A DNA stretch of 64,000 nucleotides. It comes from Monocercomonoides exilis PA203. Taxonomy: Eukaryota; Protista; Preaxostyla. The position numbers and the translations under genes are program-made. Every line of letters starts with the position of its first letter. Positions within the stretch are counted from its first letter, which is position 1. The DNA lies in the NCBI GenBank assembly GCA_001643675.2, contig LSRY02000001.1, positions 1,612,001-1,676,000 on the forward strand, written 5' to 3'. A model generated the notes under the pieces. The model ran no database searches. It saw nothing but the letters and a program-made list of their open reading frames with translations, and had not been told where the DNA came from. Of this stretch, positions 8,777 to 33,800 are shown one piece after another.

Positions 8777-11700
8777 TTGGATGCAACATATCTGCTTTCA
8801 TTCAAGGCTTTAAATGCTGTTGTTATGCTTTCTGATAAAAGTTCTCGCAGAATGAAAACTCTTGTTGCTCATCGATATTGCGCAGGAATTCTTTATCAAC
8901 TACCGACGGAGGATGTTGCTTTTTTTATTCCACAACTTTGGTTTGACTTTGCATTTTAAAATTTTAAATTTCAAATGTGTTTTTATGTTCAAAAGCATTC
9001 TTTCTCTTCAAACAAACTCTCCTTTTATTGATTATGTTCTTCTTACCCTTGCATCGCGCTCTATTCACATCGGATTGACAATTTATGTTCAGCTTAAAAG
9101 CCATGCAGACGATGAAATTAATAACCAAGTATTTAACACAAAAATTGATTCTTTTGTTTTCTTTGCTCCTTTTACAAAATATAAAAATTTGAATGCTTTT
9201 TCGTTTTAGGCAGAAAGAGCTCGACTGCACGCAAACTCAAAAAATGATAGTGATGAAGCTACCGATCCTTCTTTGTTCAATTCTTCAGTTTCATCAGATT
9301 CTTTTATTAATGATAAGGAAACAAGTGATCAGCAAAACTCTCTTTCTTCATCAAAAAGCCAAGATTCCCCTTCGACTATTTTACACACTGCAGTTTCCAA
9401 ATCTTCGCGATCATCTTCTGTTTCTTCAACACATTCTCCAGGCGAATCTCCTACTTCTAGTGCTTCGACGATTTCAACCCAGAAAGATAACCAAACGCCT
9501 ACTCCTTCTGCTTCTGCCAATCAGAGCAAAAAAATGATGCATTGGAGACAGAAAGTGTTTGAGCTGATGGAATATGTTGAGATGGCTGTGGTGAACGGAC
9601 TGTCATTCAGAATCGAAGAGGCACTCAAGGCTCTCTCAGTATACCACACGAACTTTACGTGGTTTGCTTCGACTGCTGCTCTTTCATCAAACAGTGCATT
9701 GCCTCTGCTAAAGCTGCCTTCACTTGCCATCTCACCTCCTTTGGCATCATCCCCATCTTCCACCAGAAGCGAAGCAAATGCTGACCCTTCGGATCTACCA
9801 AGCACCAAAAATGATTCTGAGAAAAGCAATTGTTCATCTTCAGTGGATTCAATTGATATAAATGCACAAAGCTCTTCTTTAACTTCTTCTTCTTCAACTG
9901 CTTTGCCTGAATTGCATCAGCTTATTCCTCCAGCTTCAGAATCCCGCTCTTCTGAAGCAGAAGAGCCTTCTTCCTCATCACTTGCCCGTTCTTCTTCTTC
10001 TATTTCTTCTACCTATTCCTCTTATTCCTCACTTTCATCCACAACCACCATAACTCCCTCTTCTTCTTCTTCTTCTTCTTCTTCTTCTTCTTCTTCTTCC
10101 ACCCACACCCTCTCCTCCCTCTCCTCCCTGCACCAGCTGTCTCCGTCCTCTGTCTGCTCGTTCTTCTCTTCCCTCACTCCTCCTCTCCCTCCTCCCGTCG
10201 GCCTCGACGAGCCGTCTGCCTCAGGAAAGGGCAAACTGCACAGGCACCGCCTCTTCTCATCCACACTCAACACACTCGAGCTGCTGAAGAAGATAAGCGC
10301 GTCTTTGAGACACCATTCGGTGGAGAAGAGGAAGGAAGTGCTGGTGAAGCAGATGACAGCGCTGGAGGAGGTGCTCGAGATGGAGGTGGAGGAGGCAGAG
10401 AAGGAGAGGAGGGCGAAGGAGGCGAAGGAGCAGAAGCTGATGGAGTGTGTGAGAGAGGAAGAGGAGGAGGAGGAAGAGGGAGAAGAGAAGAAGAATAAGA
10501 ATAAGAAGCAGACGACGTTGAGAAGGAAAACAGCACAACTGTTTTCGTATCTGTCAGCGAAGATGAAGAAGAAACTGGGGAAGAAAGAGAAGAAGGGGAA
10601 GAAGAAGGGGAAAGGAAGAGAAAAAGAAAAAGTAACGCAAACTGAAAAGTCAAATGAATTTAATGGAAAGAAAATGAATGAGCGAAAGGGAAGAAGTGAG
10701 AAAGAAAATGTGGAACAAAATGCAGAAGATGCCACAGACAATAACAACCACAACAATGATAATGAAGAAGAAGCTGACATAGAAATTAATGAAGACATAG
10801 AAGAAGATGATGATGAAAACGAAGAAGATGACGAAGAAGAAGAAGAAGAAGACGATGAAGATGACTATTCACTTTCCCTCTATCAGCACGGCGACCCCTT
10901 CCTCTCCTTCCTCCTCCCACTGCCTTTAAATCAGGTGAACAAACTTCCTCCTCGTGTCATCCGCTTCCTGCCTTCTGAGTGTTCTGTGCTGAAGTCGCGT
11001 GAAAGGGCGCCTGTGATGGTGTGGATGGAGTGCTGTGATGCGAGCTGTGCAGAAGGGGTGATGGCAGTGAAGGAGGAGGTGTGGAGGCAGAGCGAGCGAG
11101 AGAGGGAGGAGAGGATGAGGAGGGGGAGGAGGAGGGGGAGGAGGAGGAATGGAGGGAAGGAGAAAGAGGAAGGGGAAGGAGAAGGGAAAGAGGGAGAAGA
11201 GGGAGAAGAGGGAGAGGAGGGAGAGGGGGAAAAGGAAGAGGACAATGAAGAGATGAAGGAGAAGGAGAAGATAAGTTCGAATGATAAAAAAGGTGGGGAA
11301 GCGACGAAAACTGATGCTAATGGAGTGACAAAGAAGAGGAACTGGGGATTTGGTTGGATGTTCAACAGAACAGCGAATCAAACTTCTTCCTCTTCTTCCT
11401 CTTCTTCCTCTTCCTCCTCCTCTTCTGCTTCTTCATCTTCTTCTGTAACAAGCAACAAACAGAGTGACAATAATAAGCCATTGAAATCAGCAGGGAAGAT
11501 TCAGTCGATCAACTCTGAAACTTTCTTTGCTCAACTGGAACTGGCTGAAAGGACACTCAAAACGAAACAAGAAGAAGAAGAAGCAAAAGGAGAAAGAGAA
11601 AGAGAAAGAGAAAGAGAAAGAGAAGGAGCTGTGAATGCTTTAGGGAATGAATCTGCTTTGCCATCATCATTGTCTTGTAATGATCATGAAAGAGTTGATG

Positions 11701-14447
11701 GAGATAAAAATGAAATAAAAATGAATTCAAAAGGAAAAGATGTGCATACTTCAACAAAAACAGAAAATATTCCAGCAAAAACGATTTCTTCTTCTTCTTC
11801 TTCCTCCTCCTCTTCTTCTTCTTTATCTTCTTCCTCTTCTCACTCACTTTCACCAGATGTTCTTGCCATTGCATATCAATCCTGCCTCTCTTCACCAACA
11901 ACATCCACACATTCATCTCCGTCCTCTCCTTCTCCATCAAACACTCCATCTTTTCTTTCTCCTCAATCATCATCATCATCATCTTCTTCTTCATTAACAA
12001 CTTCAAATTCTTCTTCTTCCTCCTCCTCTTCTTCTTCTTCCTCTTCTCCAACAGAAGAATCGTCTTCTTCTCTTCCTCCGTCCACTTCAACCTCAAAACT
12101 CACATCATCTCAAGCACAACCTCTTTGCCCTGCTCTTCCTCTGCCTCTTCCTCTGCCTCTTTCACATTCTTCTTCTTCTTCTTCTTCTTCTTCTTCTTCT
12201 TCCTCCTCCTCCTCCTCCTCCTCCTCCTCCTCTTCCTCTTCCTCTTCCTCTTCCTCTTCCTCTTCCTCTTCCTCTTCCTCTTCCTCTTCCTCTTCCTCTT
12301 CCTCTTCCTCTTCCTCTTCTTCACTTCCCATGAATCACATCAATTCATTACCCCAATCACAATCACAATCACCACCACCGCAACTCTCTAATATTTCTCT
12401 TTCTCCTCCTCCTCCTCCTTCTTCTTCTTCTTCTTCTTCTCTTCCTCTTCCTTCTCTTCCTCCTCCTCATCCTCTCCCTCTCTCTCTTCCTCATTCTCTT
12501 TCTCCCACCTCTCTTCCAGTCATTCCGGACCTCTCCTCCATTTGGATGGCCAAAAGCTCCTATCAAATGCTCTCTGTCCGCTCTTCCCGCATCTTCTCTT
12601 CTTCTCCTTTCACTCAATGCACAAACACCGCATATTCTGCTAATTCTGCTAATTCTTCTTCCTCTTCCTCTTCCTCCTCTTCCTCTTCCTCCTCTTCCTC
12701 TTTTTTTTCTTCCTCCTCCTCTTCTTCCTCTTCCTCCTCCTCCTCCTCCTCCTCATCTTCCAATTCAGCCAATCATATCAAACACATTAATCACCCAAAC
12801 TTCTCCAATAACCCTAATATTTCCTCCAATTCCAATAATTCCATTGATTCCATCAATAACCCCAATAGCTTATATAAATCCAGCAACCTCAATAATTCCA
12901 TCAATTCTTCCAATAACCCCGATAACCCCAACAACCACCACCACCACCGTCTCCTCTCCGTCATCTCCAAGGAATACGACGATGTGCGGCAAGACCAGCT
13001 GGTTGTGCAGCTGATTGCCCTCATCGCCCGCATCTGCTCATCAGCTGGTGTGCCCGCCTGGTTCTGCCCGTATGGCGTGGTTGTCACAGGGGCAGACTCA
13101 GGATTGGTGGAGACAATTGCTGACTCTCTTTCCATACACTTCATCAAAGCGAAGTTTCCAGGCGCTGCTACACTGTATCAGTACTTCTGTGCAGCTTATG
13201 GGCCTCCGTATTTTGAGTGCAGTGCGTTTTTGGGGTTTGGAGTGAGTCAACAACAGAAAGAAGAACAGCATAAAGAACAAGAAAAAGAAAAAGAAGAACA
13301 AAAGAAGGGAGAAAAAGGAGGAGAAAAAGAGAATTCTGGATTACAGGCCATGGATGGACAAGCTGTGGGTGATAGATTCAGTTTCTCATCGCTTTCTTCG
13401 AGTGATTCGAGTGATTTTGTTGGTTCATCATCATCATCTTCTTCTTCTTCTGAACATCCTTCTTCTTTGCTTTTTGAAGAGAACAAACAGAAAATTGAAA
13501 ATTCTTCTTCTTCTTCTTCTTCTTCTTCTTCTTCTCTTTCTCTTTCTCCTTCATCCACCCCTTCTCCTCCACCACACTCTTCATCACATGCATTGCTAAC
13601 AGTTGCAATGACACCTGTATCTAACCATGAAGCTACTTCTTCAATGACAAATACATCATCTGATGCTTCTTCTTCTTCTTCTTCTCTTTCTTCCTCTCTT
13701 TCTCTTTCTCCTTCTCCTTCTCATTCATCACGTGCATCTCCTTCATTAACTCGTTCTTCTTCTCTTCCTTCTTCTTCCTCTTCCTCCTCTTCCTCCTCCT
13801 CCTCCTCTTCTTCCCTTTCCTCTCTCTCCCCTTCCCCTTCTTCCTCTCCTTCTCCCTCTCCCTCCTCACCCCCCATCCACACCCAGCTTATCCCCAACCC
13901 CATCCACAAGGCAGCTGTGAATGCCTTCGCCCTCTCCTTAGCAGGCTCCTCTCTTGTCACCTACCTTCTGCAGATCAAAGACAGACACAACGGCAACATC
14001 ATGCTGGACAAAGAAGGGCATGTGATCCACATCGACTTCGGATTCATCTTGTCTCGCTCCCCTGGCAATGTTGGGTGGGAAAGGGCGCCTTTTAAGCTGA
14101 CTGCAGAGATGGTGGAGGTGCTGGGGGGAGTGAATGGAGAAGCGTATAATCTGTTTGTGAGCACACTTGTGAGTGCGTTTGCAGCCGTGAGGAGGAAAGC
14201 GGAGTGGCTGGTGGCGTTCCTGCAGATTATGGCTGAGGACTCCCAGCTCCCTTGCTTCAGGGCAACAGACGCCTCACCCACGGCGGGGGAAGACGCAATC
14301 AAGGACTTTAAGCAGCGGCTGGCGCTGGATGTGGAGGATGGGCAGCTGGAGCAGCATGTGAAGGAGCTCGTGCACGCGTCGCTGTCGAGCTGGGCGACGT
14401 CATCGTATGACTCGTATCAGAAGCTGACGAACGGGATTATCCCGTAA
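8777..14447 (+). CDS. PI4KB: Phosphatidylinositol 4-kinase type III beta-like, with very large low-complexity insertions (true start uncertain, ~8614-8777)
   Basis: N-terminal helical region (LYQLPTEDVAFFIPQL, LASRSIHIG) in small exons. Catalytic motifs LKSRERAP, KEYDDVRQDQL, SGLVETI, YLLQIKDRHNGNIMLD, HIDFGFILSRSPG, ERAPFKLT and the C-terminal YDSYQKLTNGI. Confidence 0.93.
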
Positions 14448-15712: not shown

Positions 15713-16195
15713 TATTAATCTATTTTGGGGAAAAATTCAAAAATCATCTCTGTGTTAATTGCTTGGTTTCGGTTGAAGGGTTAGCGAAACAGTTCTTGGG
15801 CTTAGTATTTTGTTCCCGCTCTTCTTTTCAGGGTTTGCGCTCAGAAAGACTAATTCATTTTTTGATCAATTTTCATGGTTTGGGTTTTGTAAAATGTTTG
15901 TGTAGGAAAAGCATTGAAAAGAAGAACTGAAACGAAATTATCGAATCAATACCAATTAGGTATGTCAAAGACTATTTCATGATACATAAAACCAAAAAGT
16001 CTTGCTCAAAACCGTTTTGATTAAGTCAAGAGCAATTGATTTAATTCTGGAAAGTGTTCATATTTTATCTTGAACTCAAAATTTTATCTCAACCTTTTTT
16101 TGTAACTTTCTGAAGTTTTTTTCGAGCTTAACAAAGGTTTGAAACAAAAAATAAATGAATAAACAATTTGATCTTAATTTTTTTCAACTTTCTGT

Positions 16196-18641
16196 GGCAT
16201 AGGTCTAAATTGTACCAGTAGCGAATTTGACGTTTTTTAATTTTATTTCACTGTAATATTAATAACCGTAATTAATTAACTCTATTTTATCGAGAAAATC
16301 TATGAAATTTGACTTTGAAAAACAATAATAAAAATTAATGATCGGACCCATAAAATATTTATATATTTTTCATTTTTTGTTTTATGTACTTATTCGCTCT
16401 ATATTTTGATTATAAAATTTTGCAATTGTCTTGTTTTTCTGTTTTTGCATGACTTCTAATCAAAAAGAATGGACTTGTTTATGTTTTGTTTTCTTTTTTT
16501 TATATAAACATTCTGCGCATTTTGAAAATAATGCATAGAATAAAAATTTATTATAAAAACAGTTTGAATAACATTGCCATTTAATTGAGAAAATTTCATA
16601 CACAAACCTTCTTTGTTCTCCATCTTGCAATGTGGATGTTCCAGTGCAAAATTTGCTTGAATCTGTTTCTAACTCAACCTTGATCCCACCACCACTACCA
16701 TTCTTGCTCTCACAATCCTCGATTGTCACATTCTGAACAACAAATGTCTCCCCTTCTGCCACACTCTTTGCCTCAACCACCCCATCTCTTTCAGTCAACC
16801 TCACATTCTCACCGTCAAGTTCGCCAGTACGCTCTCTCCTGATGCTGTGGCTGTCAGATACAGTGCAGATGACGACAATGACGACAATGAAGAAGAAGAG
16901 AGATCCGGCTCAGAGAACAATGGTTTTGAGACATTCATATTTATGATCTCCACATCGGTCATCAACAGCTGTGACAGCGCCACCACAAACACTGACGACA
17001 ACATCACATAGTCTCCTGAAGAAACACTCGTGGTGATCACAACATCCTCCAATGAGAGTAACCCACCTCCATCAGACACCACAACCACACTCGACGAAGA
17101 AGGATTTGCATTTGAGTTGCAGTCAACCTTCATGTGCAATAAACCAAGATGACCTGTTGTCACACTGAACAACGTTCCTACTGCTGATGATAACGAAGAA
17201 AGTGCTCCTGTTCCAATCGAACATGTTTCCTTTCCTTTCCCAATAACTGAAATCTTCTTTTCTCCAATCTCAATCGTTGTTGCCTCGCTTATGTGATTCC
17301 CTTCGATCAGAGTGATTGTCAAGCTAATCTGCACCTCACACATCTCAAGCGCATTCTTCACTGTCAGACACGGATTTGATTCATTTGCCCCACACAGCTC
17401 ATTCAGGTCATTCCCGCTCACTGACACGTATACTGTCTTGTCCTTCAACCAATCCTTCTTTTCTGTGTGTTGAAATAGCCAGCTTCTTCCTGTGTAATTA
17501 TATCCATAACATACTCTCCTATCATCAGCATTTGTAGAATAGCACTCGTAGAACGGATTCCCTGACTCTTAATAAAGACTGTAATGATCTGTATATGCAA
17601 TGTCATGCCCGTATGGTGGATTGGCCAAGCATTTGCATTCATAGAAGAAAAGAAAACAGCAATAAATAATATCATTTTGCGATGTTTGTCTATTTGGGTG
17701 CAATCTCAAACCTCCTCCATGTGATGCCGCTGAACATGAAATGAACTGGATGCTCCTTATTTTCAATGTAGCTGGAATAAATGAGCAATTCATTCCTCCA
17801 CCATAATTTCTTGTTAGTGAGTAAGAAGTAAATGAGCATTCAAACACACAAGCACTCTCCCCTTTCCCACTTTCTGCTCCGATACATCCAGAACGAGAAA
17901 CCTGAAAAGAATTAAGATAAAGCCCTCCTCCTATTCTATCTGCTTTGTATTTTAAAAATTCTCAACCACTGATCCTGACACACTCCTGAACCGGATGAGC
18001 CATAATTTCTCCTCCTTCATCTTTTTCGGCAACATATCCATTGCACGAATTATTCTCAGCCTTGACTGAACTGATCGAATAGCAAAAAATTCCTCCACCA
18101 TCACAATGCGCATGGCAATAATAAAACGGACAAAATTTCACGGAAAGTGTTCCCGATCCAAGGTTATATATGAAAATCGCTCCATCAATTGAAGATCTCT
18201 GTGAGTAATAAGTTTTTGATCCAATTGTTTTTGATCCAATCCTCTAATGCCAAAATAAAGTATTCAATTCAATGGATGTTTAGCTTCATGACAAAAATTC
18301 TATTTCATCAAGCAAGAATCATATTTCGAATAGATTTTGATTACGAAAAATATTACACATATAAAAATAAATAAATAAAAGATATACAAAGAATTATATT
18401 TTTGACAATCATTATCTTTGCTGACAACAACTAAATTTCTTTGTTTCACTCCAAAAACAAAAAATGAAAAATATATAAATATTTTATGGGTCCGATCATT
18501 AATTTTTATTATTGTTTTTCAAAGTCAAATTTCATAGATTTTCTCGATAAAATAGAGTTAATAAATTACGGTTATTAATATTACAGTGAAATAAAATTAA
18601 AAAACGTCAAATTCGCTACTGGTACAATTTAGACCTATGCC
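16196..18641. mobile_element. Non-autonomous long-TIR DNA transposon carrying a host-gene fragment (Pack-type; Merlin- or Mutator-like)
   Basis: 188-bp TIRs at 16196-16383 and 18454-18641 (start GGCATAGGTCTAAATTGTACC, one mismatch seen). 8-bp direct repeat CTTTCTGT at 16188-16195 and 18642-18649. No transposase inside. Confidence 0.92.
16610..18190 (-). pseudogene. Frameshifted fragment of the large GG(A/G)I-repeat surface/receptor protein family (cargo of the TIR element)
   Basis: Overlapping short ORFs with DGAIFIY, GGGIFC, YGGGMNC, HGGGLRL, VYVSVSGNDLNELCGANESNPCLTV and IEDCESKNGSGGGIKV. These parallel RFVNSNGTTDDICGYRKNYPCKSI and IEDCVAESGNGGGLKL in the 30854 ORF. Confidence 0.85.
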
Positions 18642-19017
18642 CTTTCTGTTATTTAATATTTTGAAAAATTTTTGTTCATAAATCTTGTTATTATTTTTTT
18701 ATTTTAGAACCCAGATCAAAGACTTGATGGTTGTCCTGCAAATATTTTGTTCAGAGCGTTTAAAGCCATGGCATCACAAATTTCACTCCTACAATATTAT
18801 TTTAACTTGTATTTAACTTTTACAATTTAATTTTTGACCTTTTTTTCGAATTTTACTGTTTTTGAATAAAACACTATTTTCGGAATAAATATGAATTTGT
18901 GTCAAATTTTATTCAAAAGAAAAAAAAAATGCAAGATCTTATATATTGTTTATTTTTGTTCAATTCTGAAATGATAAAGAATTGAACATGAATTTGAAAA
19001 GAAATGGAAGAACATAT

Positions 19018-19491
19018 GGGGCTAAATATTTAGCTTCAGGCATTTTCATAGATAAATTATGCACTTTTTCTTGACTTTTTGAGTCCAAAAAACACAATAA
19101 AAATGGATTTATTTTATTAATTACGTTTGAGGTCACAAAACATAATGTTATTATAACATTTTCGTTTGAATACGAATTTGATAATCCAATTTATTTTGAA
19201 ATCTGAGAAAGCGAAATAAAGTTATGAGTGAAACAATTTTTTCAAGCTTTTTATGCACAAAGCATGAAAAAATTGTTTCACTCATAACTTTATTTCGCTT
19301 TCTCAGATTTCAAAATAAATTGGATTATCAAATTCGTATTCAAACGAAAATGTTATAATAACATTATGTTTTGTGACCTCAAACGTAATTAATAAAATAA
19401 ATCCATTTTTATTGTGTTTTTTGGACTCAAAAAGTCAAGAAAAAGTGCATAATTTATCTATGAAAATGCCTGAAGTCAAATATTTTGTCCC
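19018..19491. mobile_element. Palindromic foldback/MITE element (~233-bp arms, ~8-nt loop)
   Basis: 19018-~19250 is the near-perfect reverse complement of ~19259-19491. Ends are GGG...CCC, flanked by ATAT on both sides (or TA|TGGG...CCCA|TA). Confidence 0.9.
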
Positions 19492-20199
19492 ATATGAAAA
19501 ATTTGATATGAAAACTGTTCGTCATATTTAAATGTTTAGGTGTTTTTTCTTTGACATATCATTTTATCACAAATTTCTTTTTTATTTCATTTCAAATAAT
19601 TTATAAAACAACAGTTCATTGAAATTTTGGAAATCATGTTTTTTTGAAAAATGTGTGAAATGAGAAAAAATGTTATCAAAACAAGTTGAGAAAGTTCAAT
19701 ACAACTTTATCAAATAAAAAGGAAACGATGTTTTACGATACGAATGCTTAGAACTTCTGATAAAAAAATATTCGCTGGAAAAGCATCAAGTCTATGATCA
19801 AAACATAAAATATTAATTATCCTCAATCTTTGAAAAAAACATGAAATCTTTGGAAAAAAGTTAGAATAAGGAAATTAATATATCACGAACATTTTTTTTT
19901 TAAACAAGCTTGTGTAAAGCAAAAAGCATGACAAAAAAGAAAAAGGTCTTGAAAAAAAAGGGCAAGAAAAAATCATTAACCTGTACGATCACATGAAAAT
20001 CACAAATATTAAGAGTTCTATTTTTGTCAATTTTTTATCAAAACATAAATTTAATGATATTATAATTAAAATAAAAACAATCTCCATAGAAAAAAAGCAA
20101 GTTTCATTGTTTTAACTTCTTCAAAATCCTTCATATTTCAATTTTTATCTGAAAAAAATATAATTTCGTAAAGCCATTCTGCTCTTTTGATTTTTTGTC

Positions 20200-23921: not shown

Positions 23922-25004
23922 TCAATTCTGCTGAGGAAGGTAAAGACCATGTCCAACTCCAGTTTGAGCTTCTCCACCGTCTTCATCACTCCGACATTTT
24001 TCGAAATACGAAGGAATGGGAAGTGGTGGATACGGGATAGACGCTCTTTCATAAAACATTGTAAGATTTTTAATTGCTGCAGAGGATCGCGCCACTGACT
24101 TTGTAGATGGAGTTTCAACAGGTGAAGGAACAGGTGAAGGAGTTACAGAAGAAGAGCTTGATGTCGGTGTTGCGTCTGATGCGGTTTCTTTAGGAGGAGG
24201 TAATGCTCCCATAACTTGTTTATGAACAGTTTCTACTCCTTTCTTTAACAATGCTTTTCCTTCTTCTTCTTCAACAGCCTTGAATTCTTCGCGTGCAGCA
24301 AGATATCCAGACAATGTTGAATGCTTTCCAGTAAAAACTCTGAAGCCATACATTTTGGGGCGCAGAAAACCCAATGGCTTTTTCATCATCAACCATGGAA
24401 ATTGTTGGAAAAATGCAAGAGGGAATGATGGACCGAATGCAGCTCCATCGATAGCATGATGCCTACGAGAGGATGGAACATATATTGATTCGCAGGATGG
24501 GCAATATAACATCACATTATCAGATCCACATTCCAATGTTTTTCCAACAGGAAGAACAGGACAGCCATTGCAAATTAATAAGGGGCATGTACCAAATACA
24601 TTTCTTTCATATTTTTCTTTCTAAAGAACATAATTTTTCAAAAAATAGAAAAAACTGAAAGAATATCAAAAACTTACCATTGCTTTAAGCCCATTCAAAG
24701 TTAAAATGTAGCGAGCATGAATCATATAATAAAGTTGCTCAGTTGCTATTTCAATTTCCTCGCTCTGAGCATCATCATCTTCTTCATCAGAAACATTATA
24801 ATCCAAAATTTCTTGAAAAGCTCTTTGAAAATGCGGCGCTTTGTTGACCAGGCCAGAAGTATTTCCAGGCGTTTCTATGAAAGAACGAGGAACTTCAACA
24901 AAAAACTCGTGGCCACGAGCGGAACAAAACCACTCGATCCAAGGCATTTCAGAGGAACTGTTATCCGAGTTATCATCAGAGTACATTTGGCCTTTTCTAG
25001 ACAT
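23922..25004 (-). CDS. CSNK2B: Casein kinase II regulatory subunit beta, 2 exons, extended C-terminus
   Basis: WIEWFCSARGHEFFVEV, acidic loop, LYYMIHARYILT, FGTCPLLIC..LYCPSC zinc ribbon, IDGAAFGPSFP and PKMYGFRV. Intron at 24621-24677. Confidence 0.95.
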
Positions 25005-25241: not shown

Positions 25242-28200
25242 CTAATTTGGATGAATTGGTGTTCGTTGTCCTAATGCAGGATGAACAGGTGTATGAGAGC
25301 CATATGATGGATGCACAGGAGTTTGACCAGAGTAAATGCCTGGATGTGTAGGTGTTTGCCCGCCCATGCCCGGGTAAATCGGGGTTTGACCGCCCATTCC
25401 AGGATAGACAGGGGTCTGGCCTCCCATGCCTGGATAGATCGGTGTCTGGCCGCCATATGACTGATAAGCTGGCGTCTGAGCGCTGTAAGAGCCATAAAGC
25501 GGAGTCTGTCCCCCATACCCTGCACGGAGCGGCGTGTACCCTCCGCCCATGTACGCCGGCGTGAGGGCTCCAGCAGCCACCATTGATGATGCAGACAACG
25601 CACCGGAAGCAGCAGAAGACGAGGCAGAAGAGGAAGGCATGGCAGAAGAGGAAGGCGCCGTGTACCGCATCTCTTCGACTAGCGCCAAGTCCTGCTTTGG
25701 AATGGTGACTGTCTTCATTGTGGCTTGTATCTCCACCCGTGCTGTGTCGCTGGTGATCGCCTTCACCATCCCCATCATTCCTTTGTAATTCCCTCTCGTT
25801 ACACGGATCGTCTTATACAGCATCGGATCCTTCCCAAACGTCTGCCTGCTCCTTCCGCCTCTGCCGCTACCGCTGTCACCTCCGCCAATACCACCCATCC
25901 CGTTTCCGCTGCTGCCCCACCCCTTTTTGTCGAGAAGCGAAAACTTCGAGTCAACTTTTGAATCAAGCATCTCGTTCTTCATTCGCGAGTCTTTCCAATC
26001 GTTTCTGCTGTCCATTCTGCTTCTGCCATCGCTCACATCATCTCTTCCGCTCCCTCCTCTCCCAGAAACGCCCCTGTCTCCGTCTCGCCCTCCCCGTGAG
26101 CCTCTGAAGCCCTTCGTCGAGCCTTGCACCGTCACCTCGCAGTCAGCCCCATTCAATGCAACAATCCCGTTATTTTCGCGAACCGGTCGGCACTCCACAA
26201 ACACAGTGTGCCCCAATATCTGCTTCACGGTGCCTGTAAACCCAGCATAAGTTCCGTATCCCTTGATCTTCACATCGTCCTCCACTCCAATCTCCCTCCC
26301 GCCGTCGTCGGTGGCTTTCCGCATCTTGCCCTTCTGCACGTTCAGCACTCGGCTCATCTGTGCTGTGACAGCCTCTCCTTCAACAGTCAGCAGCCGCACA
26401 GTCTGCGCATCCACATCCACAACACACCCGCTGGTCTCATCGTCCAGCACAACAACATCAAACTGGCTGATCCTCCCCGTCGGATCGCCTTTCGATTCGT
26501 ATGCCGACGCAAGCTGCACATCCACCCCAAACACATCCACAGCATCTCCTGTGCCGTCCACCAGAATGCTGACAATGTCCTTCTCGATGTTCTGCACCAC
26601 CACAATACCCGTGCTGTTCGTGTGAACTCCGCCTATCACACGCACATGCGACCCAACAGGAAATATCTTCTGCAGATAGATGGCTTCAAACTGCAGAAGC
26701 TCCTTCAGCTCTTCGTGCATCGGCTTCACGGTCACAAGCGGACCTTCAAGTTGCACCACTTTCCCTTCCACGCCCTTCAAATCTCCTTCCACCACAATCA
26801 CCCGGTCGCCCAGCGCAAACACCCGCTTGCGCTTCATCTTCTGCAGTGCCTGCGCAGCCTCCAGCTCGTTCTTCTCTTCGCTTCCTCTGTCAAACCGCGC
26901 AATCTCCTCCAGCGTCGGATTGACGTCCTTCGTCTGGATCATCATCTCCGAGAAGTTCCGCACCAGGAACCCGTCGTAGTAGCGGTATGCCTTGTAGATG
27001 TAGAACTCCTCTCCGTCTGGCGCTGTGCGCTGGTCAACCTCCTCGTGCAGCCGCAGCAGCTCATCTGCATCGAAATACCGCGCTGCGGGCCGCTTGCCTC
27101 GCCCAAACCCAAACGGCCCTTTCTTCTTCTTTCCCGACGCTGCTCCGTCGCCGCCGTCGATGTCCTCTTCGCCCGCGGAGAAGTCGTTGTCGTCGAGATC
27201 TTCCTCGTCCACTCGCTGCCTTTTCCCTTCTCTATTCTCTGCTTCTCCATCCACATCCAGCTCGCTGCCCATCCCGCTGTCTCCCCTCTTCGCGCCCTTA
27301 GCGATCCCTTCGTAGTCGATACGCGGAATCAGCTTCACCAGCACCGTCTTCCTCGGGATGTCGTGATCCACCACTTGCCCCAAATCGCCTCTGTATATCC
27401 CTCTTTTGATGCGGATCCAGTCTCCCTTCGATAGCTCCACATCGATTTCACCATCGCGCGTGGCGAGCGTCATGCTCGACGTCAGAATGGCATCTGCTTC
27501 GCGGACAGGCACAGACGCTGGGGGCGTTTTGAAAAACAGCTCCAGCTCGTCAACAGCCTGCTGAACAGCATCCATACGATCAGCCTCCACAAAGACGCAA
27601 TCTTTCAAATTGTCGTTGGCAAATACAGATTTGATGCCAAGATGCTCTCCTCTGGCTTTTAGTGTGAAAAATTTGTTTGTTAATACAATGGCAGCTTCAC
27701 GAGCTTTCCCAATCTAAAGTGAAAATTCCATATAATTTTTTGATGAAAAAAATAAATTATAAACAATTTAACATAAATAAAACAAGAACAAAAAATACCT
27801 TCACCCGACATCTCCATAATTTTGAATCTTGAATTGTTGGCAACCTCGTTGTAGAAAGAGCACTTCCTTCCATAAATACGCCATCGCTGTAGCGATCGTC
27901 ACTAAATGGATAATTGTGAAAAGATAAGAAAGGAAAAGAATATAGCCACTTTAAAAATAATTTTATTAATTATATTGCAAACATGGTCGTTCCTCGCTTT
28001 AATCTTTCCAAAAGCTGCTCTTCAGTCAGTTTTGCTTCTTCAAAAGATCTTTTTTGCCTATCAATAACTCTTTGATTGGCTTCTTCATTTGCACGCTTAA
28101 AGTCTTTGCTTTGTGCAACTAAAATTTTAGAAGCATTGAGTTTTGATAAAAGTAACATATATTTGAATAAAGAACGTTTATCATACTTTCACGCTCTTCC

Positions 28201-30853: not shown

Positions 30854-33800
30854 ATGATTGCTGCAATTCTTTTCACCTTCTTCCAAGCAAATTTCAGTGC
30901 AATGAAATGGAAAGAAAATATAAACTGTGAAAATATTGATTGTGAGCGAAATCAGAATTTATCAAATTCTACTCAAGAAAGAACCGAAAGAGGAATAATT
31001 CTTGGATCTTTTACTGTTCAAAACACAACACTTGAATGCTCATGTATCATTCTCAAAACATCAAATAACCAATCTTTCTTTCGAATCAATGAGCAATCAG
31101 TTCTTTTCCTCACGAGCTGCATTTCAATTTCTTCTTCTGAATACAGTTTTTTTGTGATTGATGGAGGAGTGGCAGATGCTAAAAATCTTTCAATTTACGC
31201 AATTCGTTCATTCACACCAATTCCAGGTTTATTCTGCTCTTCATCCAATTCAATAATGTTCCACAAAGAAGCATTTATTTCTCTTTCCGATTCATTGTTT
31301 TCATCGTTTGAGATGTCAAAAACTCCGCTCCTAGCAGCAGACATTTGTTGTTCAGTTTCCGCCACCTGCCTTTTTATGCACAACATCACATCAACATTTC
31401 CAGTTCAGTCTGTGTCCCCAACGATATCAGTTGCAACTTCGACAACACTCGACAGTTGTATTTTTCATAGAGTTAGTGATGTTATTGATGGGGGTATTAC
31501 AAGATCAGTGAACAGTCCATCTTCTTCACTTGCAGCTCTCAATATCACCTTCGAAAGCTGTATCCGCCAAGCAAACATAGCCGTATCAAATAATAAAAAT
31601 ATGAAGCAGCAAAAACTTGGTGCAAATGAAGTACATGTTTTTACTAACTGTGAATGGCATGACGCTAACATTAACGGAGTTGGAAGTGCAATCTATTTGT
31701 TAGGAACCTCTTCCCTTGAATGCAAAAGATGCAGTTTTCGCAATATGAGCCATAACAACGATGGAGCTGTTGATGTTCAAAAAGGATTGGGCGTTAAACT
31801 AACTGAATGCAATTTCACAAATTGTGAATCAAGAAAAAATTCTGGTGGAGTTTTATTATTTTTCGTGACTGATGACTATTGCATTTCGCGCTGCATCTTC
31901 ACTAGATGCAAAGCTTCTCCAGAATACGCTGGAGGCTTAAGAATAAACCAACTGTCTGGAAATGATAATAATTTGATACAATTATGTCGATTCTTAAACA
32001 ACGAAGCTGCATCTTATGGTGGTGGCTTATACATCCAAAAAAATACAACGAGATATGTCATATCTGAGTGTGATTTCTTTAACAATATTGCGAATGGAAC
32101 AGGAGAAGTTTATAAACGTGGAGGTGGTGGTGCATTTATTGAATCAACAGAATGGATGAAAAACGATCCCTCTCCTGTAATATTTTCTTTCTGTATTTTC
32201 ATGAATAATGAAGCGCAATGCGAAGAGGGACTTGATGTCAAAATAAACAATTCATATATTGTTGCCAACCCATTTGAAAACTCTTACTCATTCACTTCGG
32301 AAAATAGAGTGTATTACAATGAAAGGAACATTCTATATAACAATTGGTTGCCCATTATTTGTGTTAGATTTGTGAATTCAAATGGAACTACCGATGATAT
32401 TTGTGGATATAGAAAAAATTATCCATGCAAGTCAATTGAGGCTGCACATCTTCTCTCCAAAAATTTACCAAAATATACGATAAATATTATGCAATCAATA
32501 TTTTCTCCATTGGCAATGATCATCGAAGGCGGAGAAGCTTCATTTGAAGGTGAAAAGGATGACAATTGTATCATAAACACATCCTTGCTGGATCCTTCAT
32601 CATTCTTGTTCACATTGACTTCAGGATCGATGAAAATATCGCTTGTTACCATTCATCACAACTCCGATGATTCTTCTGTTTCACTATTTGCGATGGGTGC
32701 AGCTTCACGGATGCTTTCTTTGAAAAGTGTAACTATTTCCGGGCTTGACGAAACAGCTGAAAGAATTCGGAGCAATTCTCTGTTTCTAGTCATATTTGCC
32801 AAGTTTCAAATGGACAACTGCTTGGTTGAGCATATTGCCTTGTCAAGCTGTTCAATCTTCGAAGAAGATATTGAGAGTGGAACAGGAGAGAACATGTTGA
32901 AGAATGTGACATTTAGCAATATTTCAAAAGGAGAAGGAAATGGAGGTATATTTTCAACATCAAGGGGAAGAAGGGACTCATTTTGGATAAAAAATGTGAC
33001 GTTCAAAAACTGCTCATGCAGTGAAGGAAATGGAGGATGTATCGATTGGAGTCTGATGCAGGGAGGATCATACAAGATTGGGCAAAGCAGCATTGCAACA
33101 GAAATTCACGATTGTGGGGCAGAGAACGGAAATGGGAATCCAAGCGGAGTGAGTGACACCGGAAGAGGAGGGGGCTTGTTCTTAACGTTGTCTGCACAAA
33201 GTGATGTGTTTGAGATTGTGAATGTGGTGTTCAACGGAAATCACGCAGAACATGGGAGGAACGTGTTTATTGCATCAAATCATCTGGAGTTGATCCCAGT
33301 TGAGAGATTCGCATTTGTCTTGCAAATGAATGAAGATGCGAGTGATGCAGAAGGGATAGGTGATTCCAGTAACACTTCACTCATCGTCCCCATTCTTTGC
33401 TATACTCAAGATGTGCCCCAAAGTGGGATTCAAGTGTCTGCTTCTGGATCTGATCATCCTCGCTGTGGTTTTGCGTTTTTCAAATGCAGAACACTGAGTT
33501 TCCCAGTCAACAGAGCGAATGGCTCTCCGATAAGCATAATAGTTAATGGCGCAGTGGATGTTGACGCAACTGTTGTCTTTTCCAAAGCTCAGACAGATGT
33601 TGATGCATCCGAAGATGGGGTGTTGCTCGTGATCCACGGAGAAGCATCGTGTGCAGAAGAGAGTTGCAAGGGATTGTTTGATGTTTCGAACAAAACAACA
33701 ATGAGAAATCTTGTGTTGAACTTGCCCTCAGTTCTGCAGTATCATGAAACGCTGTTTAACTTGAAAAAAGACATTTTGGAATTCAATCAATGCGGATTTC

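Follow-up and report, generated by a model that had tools for sequence, protein, structure and literature searches.

A non-autonomous Merlin transposon of Monocercomonoides exilis that probably carries an ancestral, decayed receptor-kinase fragment patched from paralogues

Merlin transposons have been described in Monocercomonoides sp. PA203, where they number more than 100 copies in at least 7 families, many with decayed transposases (PLoS One 2021, PMC8101967). They have GG termini, 8-bp target-site duplications (TSDs) without consensus, and terminal inverted repeats (TIRs) of 23–29 bp with unclear inner borders (PMC8101967). The criteria used there for Merlin are TIRs starting with GG, an 8- or 9-bp TSD, and an IS1595-type transposase; the elements are reported without cargo, and the terms 'non-autonomous', 'MITE' (miniature inverted-repeat transposable element), and 'captured' do not occur in the main text (PMC8101967). 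There is ample documentation, chiefly from plants, of gene fragments carried by Mutator, CACTA, hAT, PIF, and Helitron elements. Our literature search found no description of a gene-carrying Merlin element or of gene-fragment carriage in a metamonad. Merlin was not mentioned in the literature on Pack-type elements and gene capture that we found, nor in the M. exilis genome paper (PMC8767320). We describe here an element at positions 16188–18649 of a 64,000-nucleotide stretch of the Monocercomonoides exilis PA203 genome (contig LSRY02000001.1, positions 1,612,001 to 1,676,000; hereafter the window). The element appears to be a non-autonomous Merlin insertion that carries an ancestral, dead fragment of a receptor-kinase gene, later patched from paralogues; we put the probability of this reading at about 0.8.

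The whole element is 2446 bp in length and is bounded by two inverted repeat arms of 188 nt each, which are 99% complementary, with one mismatch, and are separated by a spacer of 2070 nt (Table 1). Both termini read 5'-GGCATAGG, and an 8-bp direct repeat lies directly outside both arms. The terminal 21-mer occurs twice within the window, compared with no occurrence expected from 100 shuffles. The first 26 nt of the left arm (GGCATAGGTCTAAATTGTACCAGTAG) are near-invariant across the family to which the element belongs, and an inner TGATCG..CCCATAA block is conserved as well. No similarity to a transposase was found between the arms by tblastn with the transposases of two related elements, L057 and L054 (best E value 2.8; L-numbers designate other element copies in the genome, and W the window copy). 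The repeat finder, the sequence itself, and tblastn thus bear out the preliminary description of this DNA, which had noted one-mismatch TIRs of this length, a perfect 8-bp TSD, the lack of a transposase, and ~1.6 kb of broken cargo.

The element belongs to a dispersed family. A search of the genome (82,301,135 bases in 101 contigs) with the arm gave 40 scored matches, and the terminal 25-mer gave 104 matches at up to 3 mismatches, whereas the reversed control gave none; ~100 elements carry the GGCATAGGT terminus. From the 25-mer and TIR searches, 23 paired copies of the family, 2.31–2.58 kb in length, were found on 16 contigs. Perfect 8-bp TSDs, all different and without consensus, flank 16 of the 21 copies checked, and the GG-starting terminus 5'-GGCATAGG is present at both ends except in two decayed or atypical copies (L040 and L041). 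The TIR is therefore multicopy and paired and has 8-bp TSDs. Three copies (L046, L047, and L050) are 99.4–99.8% identical over the whole element and occupy three sites with three different TSDs, from which it follows that the family transposed recently. The family differs from MITEs, which are shorter than ~0.8 kb, non-coding, and of high copy number, in its length, its coding-derived interior, and its 23 copies.

These same copies bear on whether the structure is a transposon at all. Short-read unitigs of the source sample span both flank/arm junctions by only 27–30 nt, which is below the 31-nt bridging rule and could be taken to favor misassembly or a local duplication in inverted orientation. 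However, the same structure recurs at 23 loci spread over 16 contigs, where the flanks differ and the 8-bp TSDs are perfect, and on this ground we reject such an origin, whose probability is practically negligible.

Two neighboring copies, L038 (C9:702423–704733) and L039 (C9:706961–709270), are 99.9% identical and have TSDs that are swapped in reverse complement (AAGAGATA / TGCTACGC versus TATCTCTT / ACGTAGCA). The swapped TSDs indicate that recombination between the two elements, which lay in opposite orientation, inverted the ~2.2 kb between them; such an inversion would account for two further copies among the TSD exceptions. An inverted segmental duplication was ruled out for this pair, as no homology was found between the flanks beyond the swapped 8-bp TSDs. 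Another copy, L043 (C35:478970–481374), is nested in a Merlin transposase remnant, its right flank having 41% amino acid identity to the enzyme over 102 residues.

The superfamily of the element is indicated by its larger relatives. Paired elements of 3.3–11 kb whose termini are identical or differ slightly were also found by the 25-mer search, and 20 of them were sampled for TSDs, transposase, and cargo. Perfect 8-bp TSDs, all different, occur in 11 of the 20. One relative, L057 (6874 bp; TSD CACAAGAA), has 22 of 25 terminal bases in common with the window family and contains an open 518-amino acid frame (L057:528–2081) that matches DDE_Tnp_IS1595 (PF12762; E value 4e-15; 56.5 bits versus a cut-off of 27) over profile positions 6–148 of 153. 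The match of this frame to the NCBIfam IS1595 profile (NF033547; E value 1e-20) scores 74.6 bits, 0.4 bit under the cut-off of 75. Decayed versions of the transposase occur in L051, L052, L054, and L063, and the first three have arms that can be aligned from end to end with those of the window copy. All element groups have in common the terminal ~24 bases and an inner block centered on CCCATAA. Because relatives with the same terminal bases and 8-bp TSDs encode DDE_Tnp_IS1595, the element is classified, by sequence relationship, as a non-autonomous Merlin (IS1595-related) transposon and not as a Mutator-like element (MULE). The preliminary description had guessed Merlin from the GG termini and 8-bp TSD, and this guess is borne out. 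The MULE identity that it had kept as an alternative is ruled out, as is hAT, since the TSD is 8 bp throughout (9–11 bp in MULEs) and the partner enzyme is of IS1595 type and not of Mutator type.

Two other transposase frames were observed near or within these elements. An open 643-amino acid Merlin transposase frame of another family (C27:195732–197081), 40% identical to that of L057, is located ~570 bp from L035. In L053, a 6.1-kb element with Merlin termini, a 513-amino acid frame with DDE_1 (pogo/Tc5-like; L053:1971–3509) splits the receptor cargo and probably represents another kind of transposon that inserted within the element.

The identity between the two arms of an element has a median of 98.1%, compared with 76% between elements, and in 14 of 20 elements the nearest relative of an arm is its own partner. 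The arms thus evolve in concert within each element in every lineage. Arms homogenized in this way provide no date for an insertion, and their near-identity, which had been read as a sign of recent movement, fails as a clock. Arm length is very plastic in the Merlin clade, ranging from 166 to 540 bp across related elements. Related families with longer arms are L065 (541 bp at 100% identity), L069 (450 bp), L068 (332 bp), and L060 (312 bp).

The interior of the element consists of four frame pieces on the minus strand that have GGG(I/M/L) and CG..PC motifs and belong to a GGG-repeat/CG..PC family. The cargo corresponds approximately to residues 270–790 of a ~3000-amino acid family member and has no start, membrane segment, or kinase. 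In the sister copy L031, a frame of 502 codons remains open (L031:983–2488), and a genome search with it gave 1831 first-look candidates. The 85 that were scored have 60–72% amino acid identity to it, and most of these sit in uninterrupted frames of ~2700–3100 amino acids. The L031 frame is 100% identical to M. exilis MONOS_9183, and the best 120 of 145 database matches are all from M. exilis. It also matches the 3003-amino acid gene at 30854 of the window, which ends in a kinase domain, over residues 343–734 of the N-terminal ectodomain (E value 7e-20, 23% identity). The earlier assignment of the cargo to the same family as this gene is thus correct, but only at the level of a distant paralogue, and the gene is ruled out as the parent of the cargo. 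Pfam and NCBIfam profiles gave no match on the cargo itself; PF13229 (Beta_helix) is listed for one relative in a precomputed table.

The cargo of the window copy is broken by two in-frame stops and by frameshifts near 16810 and 16547, the second being a 2-bp deletion relative to L031. As one of the stops, a TGA, is common to all five sisters (W and L031–L034), the lineage must have spread with its cargo already dead in the common ancestor, and in this respect the preliminary description, which had the unit moving with decayed cargo on board, was correct. The recently moved trio (L046, L047, and L050) has no frame longer than 134 amino acids. Together, the broken cargos of the sisters and of the trio indicate that the cargo is not needed for movement. 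In an RNA run, contigs of 50–70 nt have 95–99% likeness to the element over 16839–17380 and are indistinguishable from transcripts of paralogues. The cargos of W and L031 are annotated publicly as protein-coding genes (MONOS_13173, 367 amino acids, and MONOS_9183, 401 amino acids, respectively), and therefore counts of the receptor family include dead transposon passengers.

The cargo is shared across the clade. The interiors of all 23 family copies align throughout, and part of the same host-gene region is present in 19 of the 20 larger relatives. In L051, L052, and L054, cargo codons ~306–452 are followed by two further segments, ORF542 and ORF822 (ORF, open reading frame), on the strand opposite the transposase, with an order and spacing that match those of host genes; L057 and L063 have the ORF542 and ORF822 segments without the leading cargo piece. 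The cargo region and the ORF822 region are ~2.1–2.2 kb apart and in the same order in five host genes (three computed). Pooled, the elements cover a collinear stretch of ~2100 of ~3000 host codons. Because all copies carry the same host region and autonomous relatives carry an adjoining collinear stretch, the simplest reading of these alignments is that the cargo is ancestral to the clade, resulting from an old and presumably single acquisition that was followed by internal deletions, rather than from capture by this copy.

The preliminary description had instead proposed a Pack-type element in a gene-capturing system that could spread ectodomain modules and help explain expansion of the family. 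In such a reading, this lineage would recently have taken the fragment from one parental gene, as part of an active system that drives the expansion. Like Pack-TYPE elements, the window copy lacks a transposase, is bounded by TIRs and a TSD, and has an interior derived from a host gene, and the cargos of different lineages are nearest to different host subfamilies. Pack-TYPE elements also have a traceable parental gene and a cargo that is absent from autonomous relatives. Here, however, the autonomous elements hold an overlapping or adjoining region, and none of the scored candidates qualified as a parental gene of high identity, the best host match being 85–87% identical in nucleotides. All 23 copies, like other families, have the same host region at the same place, and different lineages have cargo boundaries in common. 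With regard to expansion of the family, ~100 element termini compare with more than 1800 first-look family loci, and all cargos observed are internal pieces in a broken state, which lends the proposed role no support. We therefore regard a fresh capture as very improbable.

In sequence, the cargo is a mosaic. The arms of W and L031–L034 are ~95–98% identical, and a tree based on the ends unites these five copies as a clade, for which support is 100%. Identity in windows of 100 bp is 94–100% at the ends and cargo edges of these copies and 57–76% at their centers, with abrupt borders between the two. Synonymous divergence (dS) between W and L031 is 0–0.05 at codons 1–150, 0.73 and 0.44 at codons 151–300, and ~0.15 beyond. 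The ratio of nonsynonymous to synonymous divergence (dN/dS) is 0.19–0.4 for the majority of the most divergent blocks, the exceptions being one block at 0.58 and two saturated blocks; it is 0.6–0.9 in the least divergent blocks where it is computable. Six of the eight indels within the aligned frame are multiples of 3. The low dN/dS and the in-frame indels argue that the patches diverged under coding constraint, as parts of working genes rather than of the element. For block 900–1300, the clade defined by the ends is rejected by the approximately unbiased (AU) test (p = 0.0021, log-likelihood difference 53.8), and L032 groups with L043 of another lineage.

Comparisons with host genes, which are identities from search tables, give a similar picture. 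The nearest relatives of the central patch of the window copy are loci with no terminal 25-mer listed nearby (85–87% identity), followed by sister copies at no more than 80%, among the scored matches (40 of about 500 candidates). The cargo of L035 is 78% identical in amino acids and 85% in nucleotides to an open 3121-amino acid host frame, compared with 61–64% amino acid identity to other family copies. Likewise, ORF822 of L057 is 83% identical to an open 2893-amino acid host frame, compared with 63–78% to the passengers of other elements. These patterns indicate that sequence was imported into the elements, or exchanged among them, and we infer that repeated gene conversion or recombination with paralogues, the presumed donors of the patches, produced the mosaic. 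Among the best candidates, which were those scored, no match exceeds 87%.

A different origin for the mosaic would be independent, repeated capture, in which each lineage took the same segment from a different receptor gene and no conversion followed; one possible route would be gap repair with template switching, for which a short stretch of homology in autonomous elements would provide the seed. The L035 cargo, whose resemblance to an intact host frame greatly exceeds that to sister elements, would be consistent with such captures, as would the ~1.4 kb of host sequence in the 2.4-kb family that is N-terminal to anything in the sampled autonomous relatives. However, in a lineage whose ends and cargo edges are 94–100% identical and include the shared stop, only internal patches differ, which is the signature of conversion tracts and not of whole-cargo replacement. 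Repeated capture is accordingly judged quite improbable.

We also considered whether the receptor-like frame is a working transposon gene, that is, a second ORF under selection. The frame is kept in essentially every element of the clade, is open over long stretches (502 amino acids in L031; 822 and 542 amino acids in L057), and has a dN/dS below 1. Furthermore, the passengers of L057 and L054/L052 are 77–79% identical in nucleotides, compared with no more than 70% for their transposases. Against this, every copy is interrupted, the five sisters spread despite their shared nonsense codon, and the most recently moved trio has only short frames. The fragment also has no membrane anchor, kinase, or start, and low dN/dS is concentrated in the imported patches, whereas the most conserved parts have the highest values given above. 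A working gene is thus highly improbable.

The nearest relatives of the central patch of the window copy show an arrangement of separate note. Dozens of inverted cargo-like pairs, 3.5–5 kb apart and within open frames of ~600–820 amino acids, are clustered on C42, C80, C71, and C53 (for example, C42:556534+/560467-, C80:1222364+/1226735-, C71:143231+/147832-, and C53:384373+/388484-). No Merlin 25-mer is listed near them, and they might represent either truncated genes in palindromic arrangement or a further kind of mobile unit.

In the reading we prefer, that of a non-autonomous Merlin insertion with ancestral and later patched cargo, a Merlin transposase made elsewhere in the genome would move the element by cut-and-paste. 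The enzyme would presumably bind two parts of the arms, namely their near-invariant outermost 26 bases and the inner TGATCG..CCCATAA block, and insertion would duplicate 8 bp of the target. The ancestor of the clade would have acquired a receptor-gene region, which internal deletions later trimmed. The center of the cargo would then have been overwritten repeatedly by paralogue versions, because the fragment is homologous to more than 1000 paralogues in the genome, whereas the arms and subterminal parts would have changed very little.

Several observations weigh against this reading. The cognate transposase clade has four copies (C10, C21, C69, and C19), each of which contains stops, and no intact cognate transposase was found in the genome search. 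The nearest open transposase, that of L057, is 54% identical to the cognate clade over the 220-amino acid segment searched, and beyond the 22 of 25 terminal bases the arms of L057 have only scattered short blocks in common with the window family, including GTTAAT..ATAATT and the CCCATAA motif. The decayed cognate enzymes and the distance of L057 leave present-day mobility unproven, and which Merlin transposase mobilizes the family can only be inferred. In the mosaic, the clade defined by the ends is not rejected by the AU test for block 1300–1700 (p = 0.75). Finally, no donor of the central patch above 87% identity was found among the scored candidates, though the flanks of the patch are 97–99% identical to a sister copy; the donors may have disappeared or escaped the search, or several short tracts may together make up the patch.

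It is possible, though unlikely, that the receptor segment serves as a standing homology handle through which sequence passes both ways between Merlin elements and more than 1000 receptor-kinase genes. If so, the transposons would ferry ectodomain patches between chromosomes and help diversify the largest gene family of the organism; conversely, the elements would use the handle to refresh themselves or to blunt homology-based silencing. The sequence comparisons favor neither the presence nor the absence of export from elements into host genes. Because their cargo appears to have been overwritten repeatedly from paralogues, Merlin elements may constitute natural markers of ectopic gene conversion in the M. 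exilis genome, 35% of which is 'unclassified repeat' overlapping kinase genes (PMC8767320).

The element is located in a gene-poor stretch between a PI-kinase-like gene, which ends at 14447, and a CK2-beta-like gene (23922–24536), and no gene disruption by the insertion is evident at the locus. The former (9273–14447) encodes a very serine-rich protein of ~1724 amino acids with a PI3/4-kinase-like C-terminus, and the latter is followed by an Spt5-like frame (25242–27608); these names come from motifs identified by eye. A near-perfect palindrome of 484 bp (19013–19496), with arms of 238 nt (98% identity) and a spacer of 8 nt, occurs 370 bp downstream of the Merlin copy and looks like a foldback or MITE-like element. 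Its ends are CATATGGGG... and ...CCCATATG, and a TSD is not assignable because CATATG is itself palindromic.

Table 1. Features of the Merlin element and its cargo (window coordinates).
Feature	Position	Strand	Basis or remark
Left TSD, CTTTCTGT	16188–16195		Identical to 18642–18649
Left TIR, 188 bp	16196–16383	+	Repeat finder, family alignment
Subterminal non-coding stretch, left arm to C-terminal end of cargo	16384–16599		94–100% identity among five sister copies
Cargo, internal ectodomain fragment of giant receptor-kinase family	16600–18240	-	Annotated publicly as MONOS_13173
1-bp deletion (frameshift) relative to open 502-codon frame of L031	16805–16815	-	Alignment to L031
Central mosaic patch of window copy	17000–17560	-	66–87% identity to L031; L031 flanks 94–99%
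In-frame TAA, private to window copy	17569–17571	-	TTA in sister L031
In-frame TGA, common to five sisters (W, L031–L034)	17962–17964	-	Cys in other lineages
Subterminal stretch, N-terminal end of cargo to right arm	18241–18453		Sister-copy alignment
Right TIR, 188 bp	18454–18641	-	One mismatch to left arm
Right TSD, CTTTCTGT	18642–18649		Identical to left duplication

Aspects of this element are found in several known systems. Bacterial IS1595-family elements with passenger genes were reportedly described as 'transporter IS' by Siguier, Gagnevin and Chandler in 2009. These are said to resemble the M. exilis element in transposase family, in 8-bp TSDs, and in the non-transposase passengers of some members, but to differ from it in being prokaryotic and in having intact, functional passengers and short inverted repeats. 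We know of no exchange between bacterial IS1595 elements and a large family of host paralogues. Galileo, of the P superfamily, and Foldback are elements with long TIRs whose arms evolve in concert. As in the M. exilis elements, their arms are near-identical within an element while lineages diverge, although the superfamilies differ. The Merlin elements previously reported from the same organism are alike in superfamily, copy number, termini, TSDs, and decayed transposases, but the elements described here have arms of 166–540 bp, and the window copy has no transposase and an interior of host-gene sequence (PMC8101967). Plant Pack-MULE and Pack-CACTA elements (PMC8903248, PMC6379663) are likewise non-autonomous TIR elements that move host-gene fragments and have TSDs; the element described here differs from them in its host, a protist, and in its superfamily, which is Merlin as opposed to Mutator, CACTA, hAT, or PIF. 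Diverse fragments of many genes are the usual content of Pack-TYPE elements, whereas in this Merlin clade the content comes from one gene family and appears to be renewed by exchange with paralogues. The case thus differs in kind from classic Pack elements, in that a single gene family rides an entire transposon clade, including its transposase-bearing, autonomous members.

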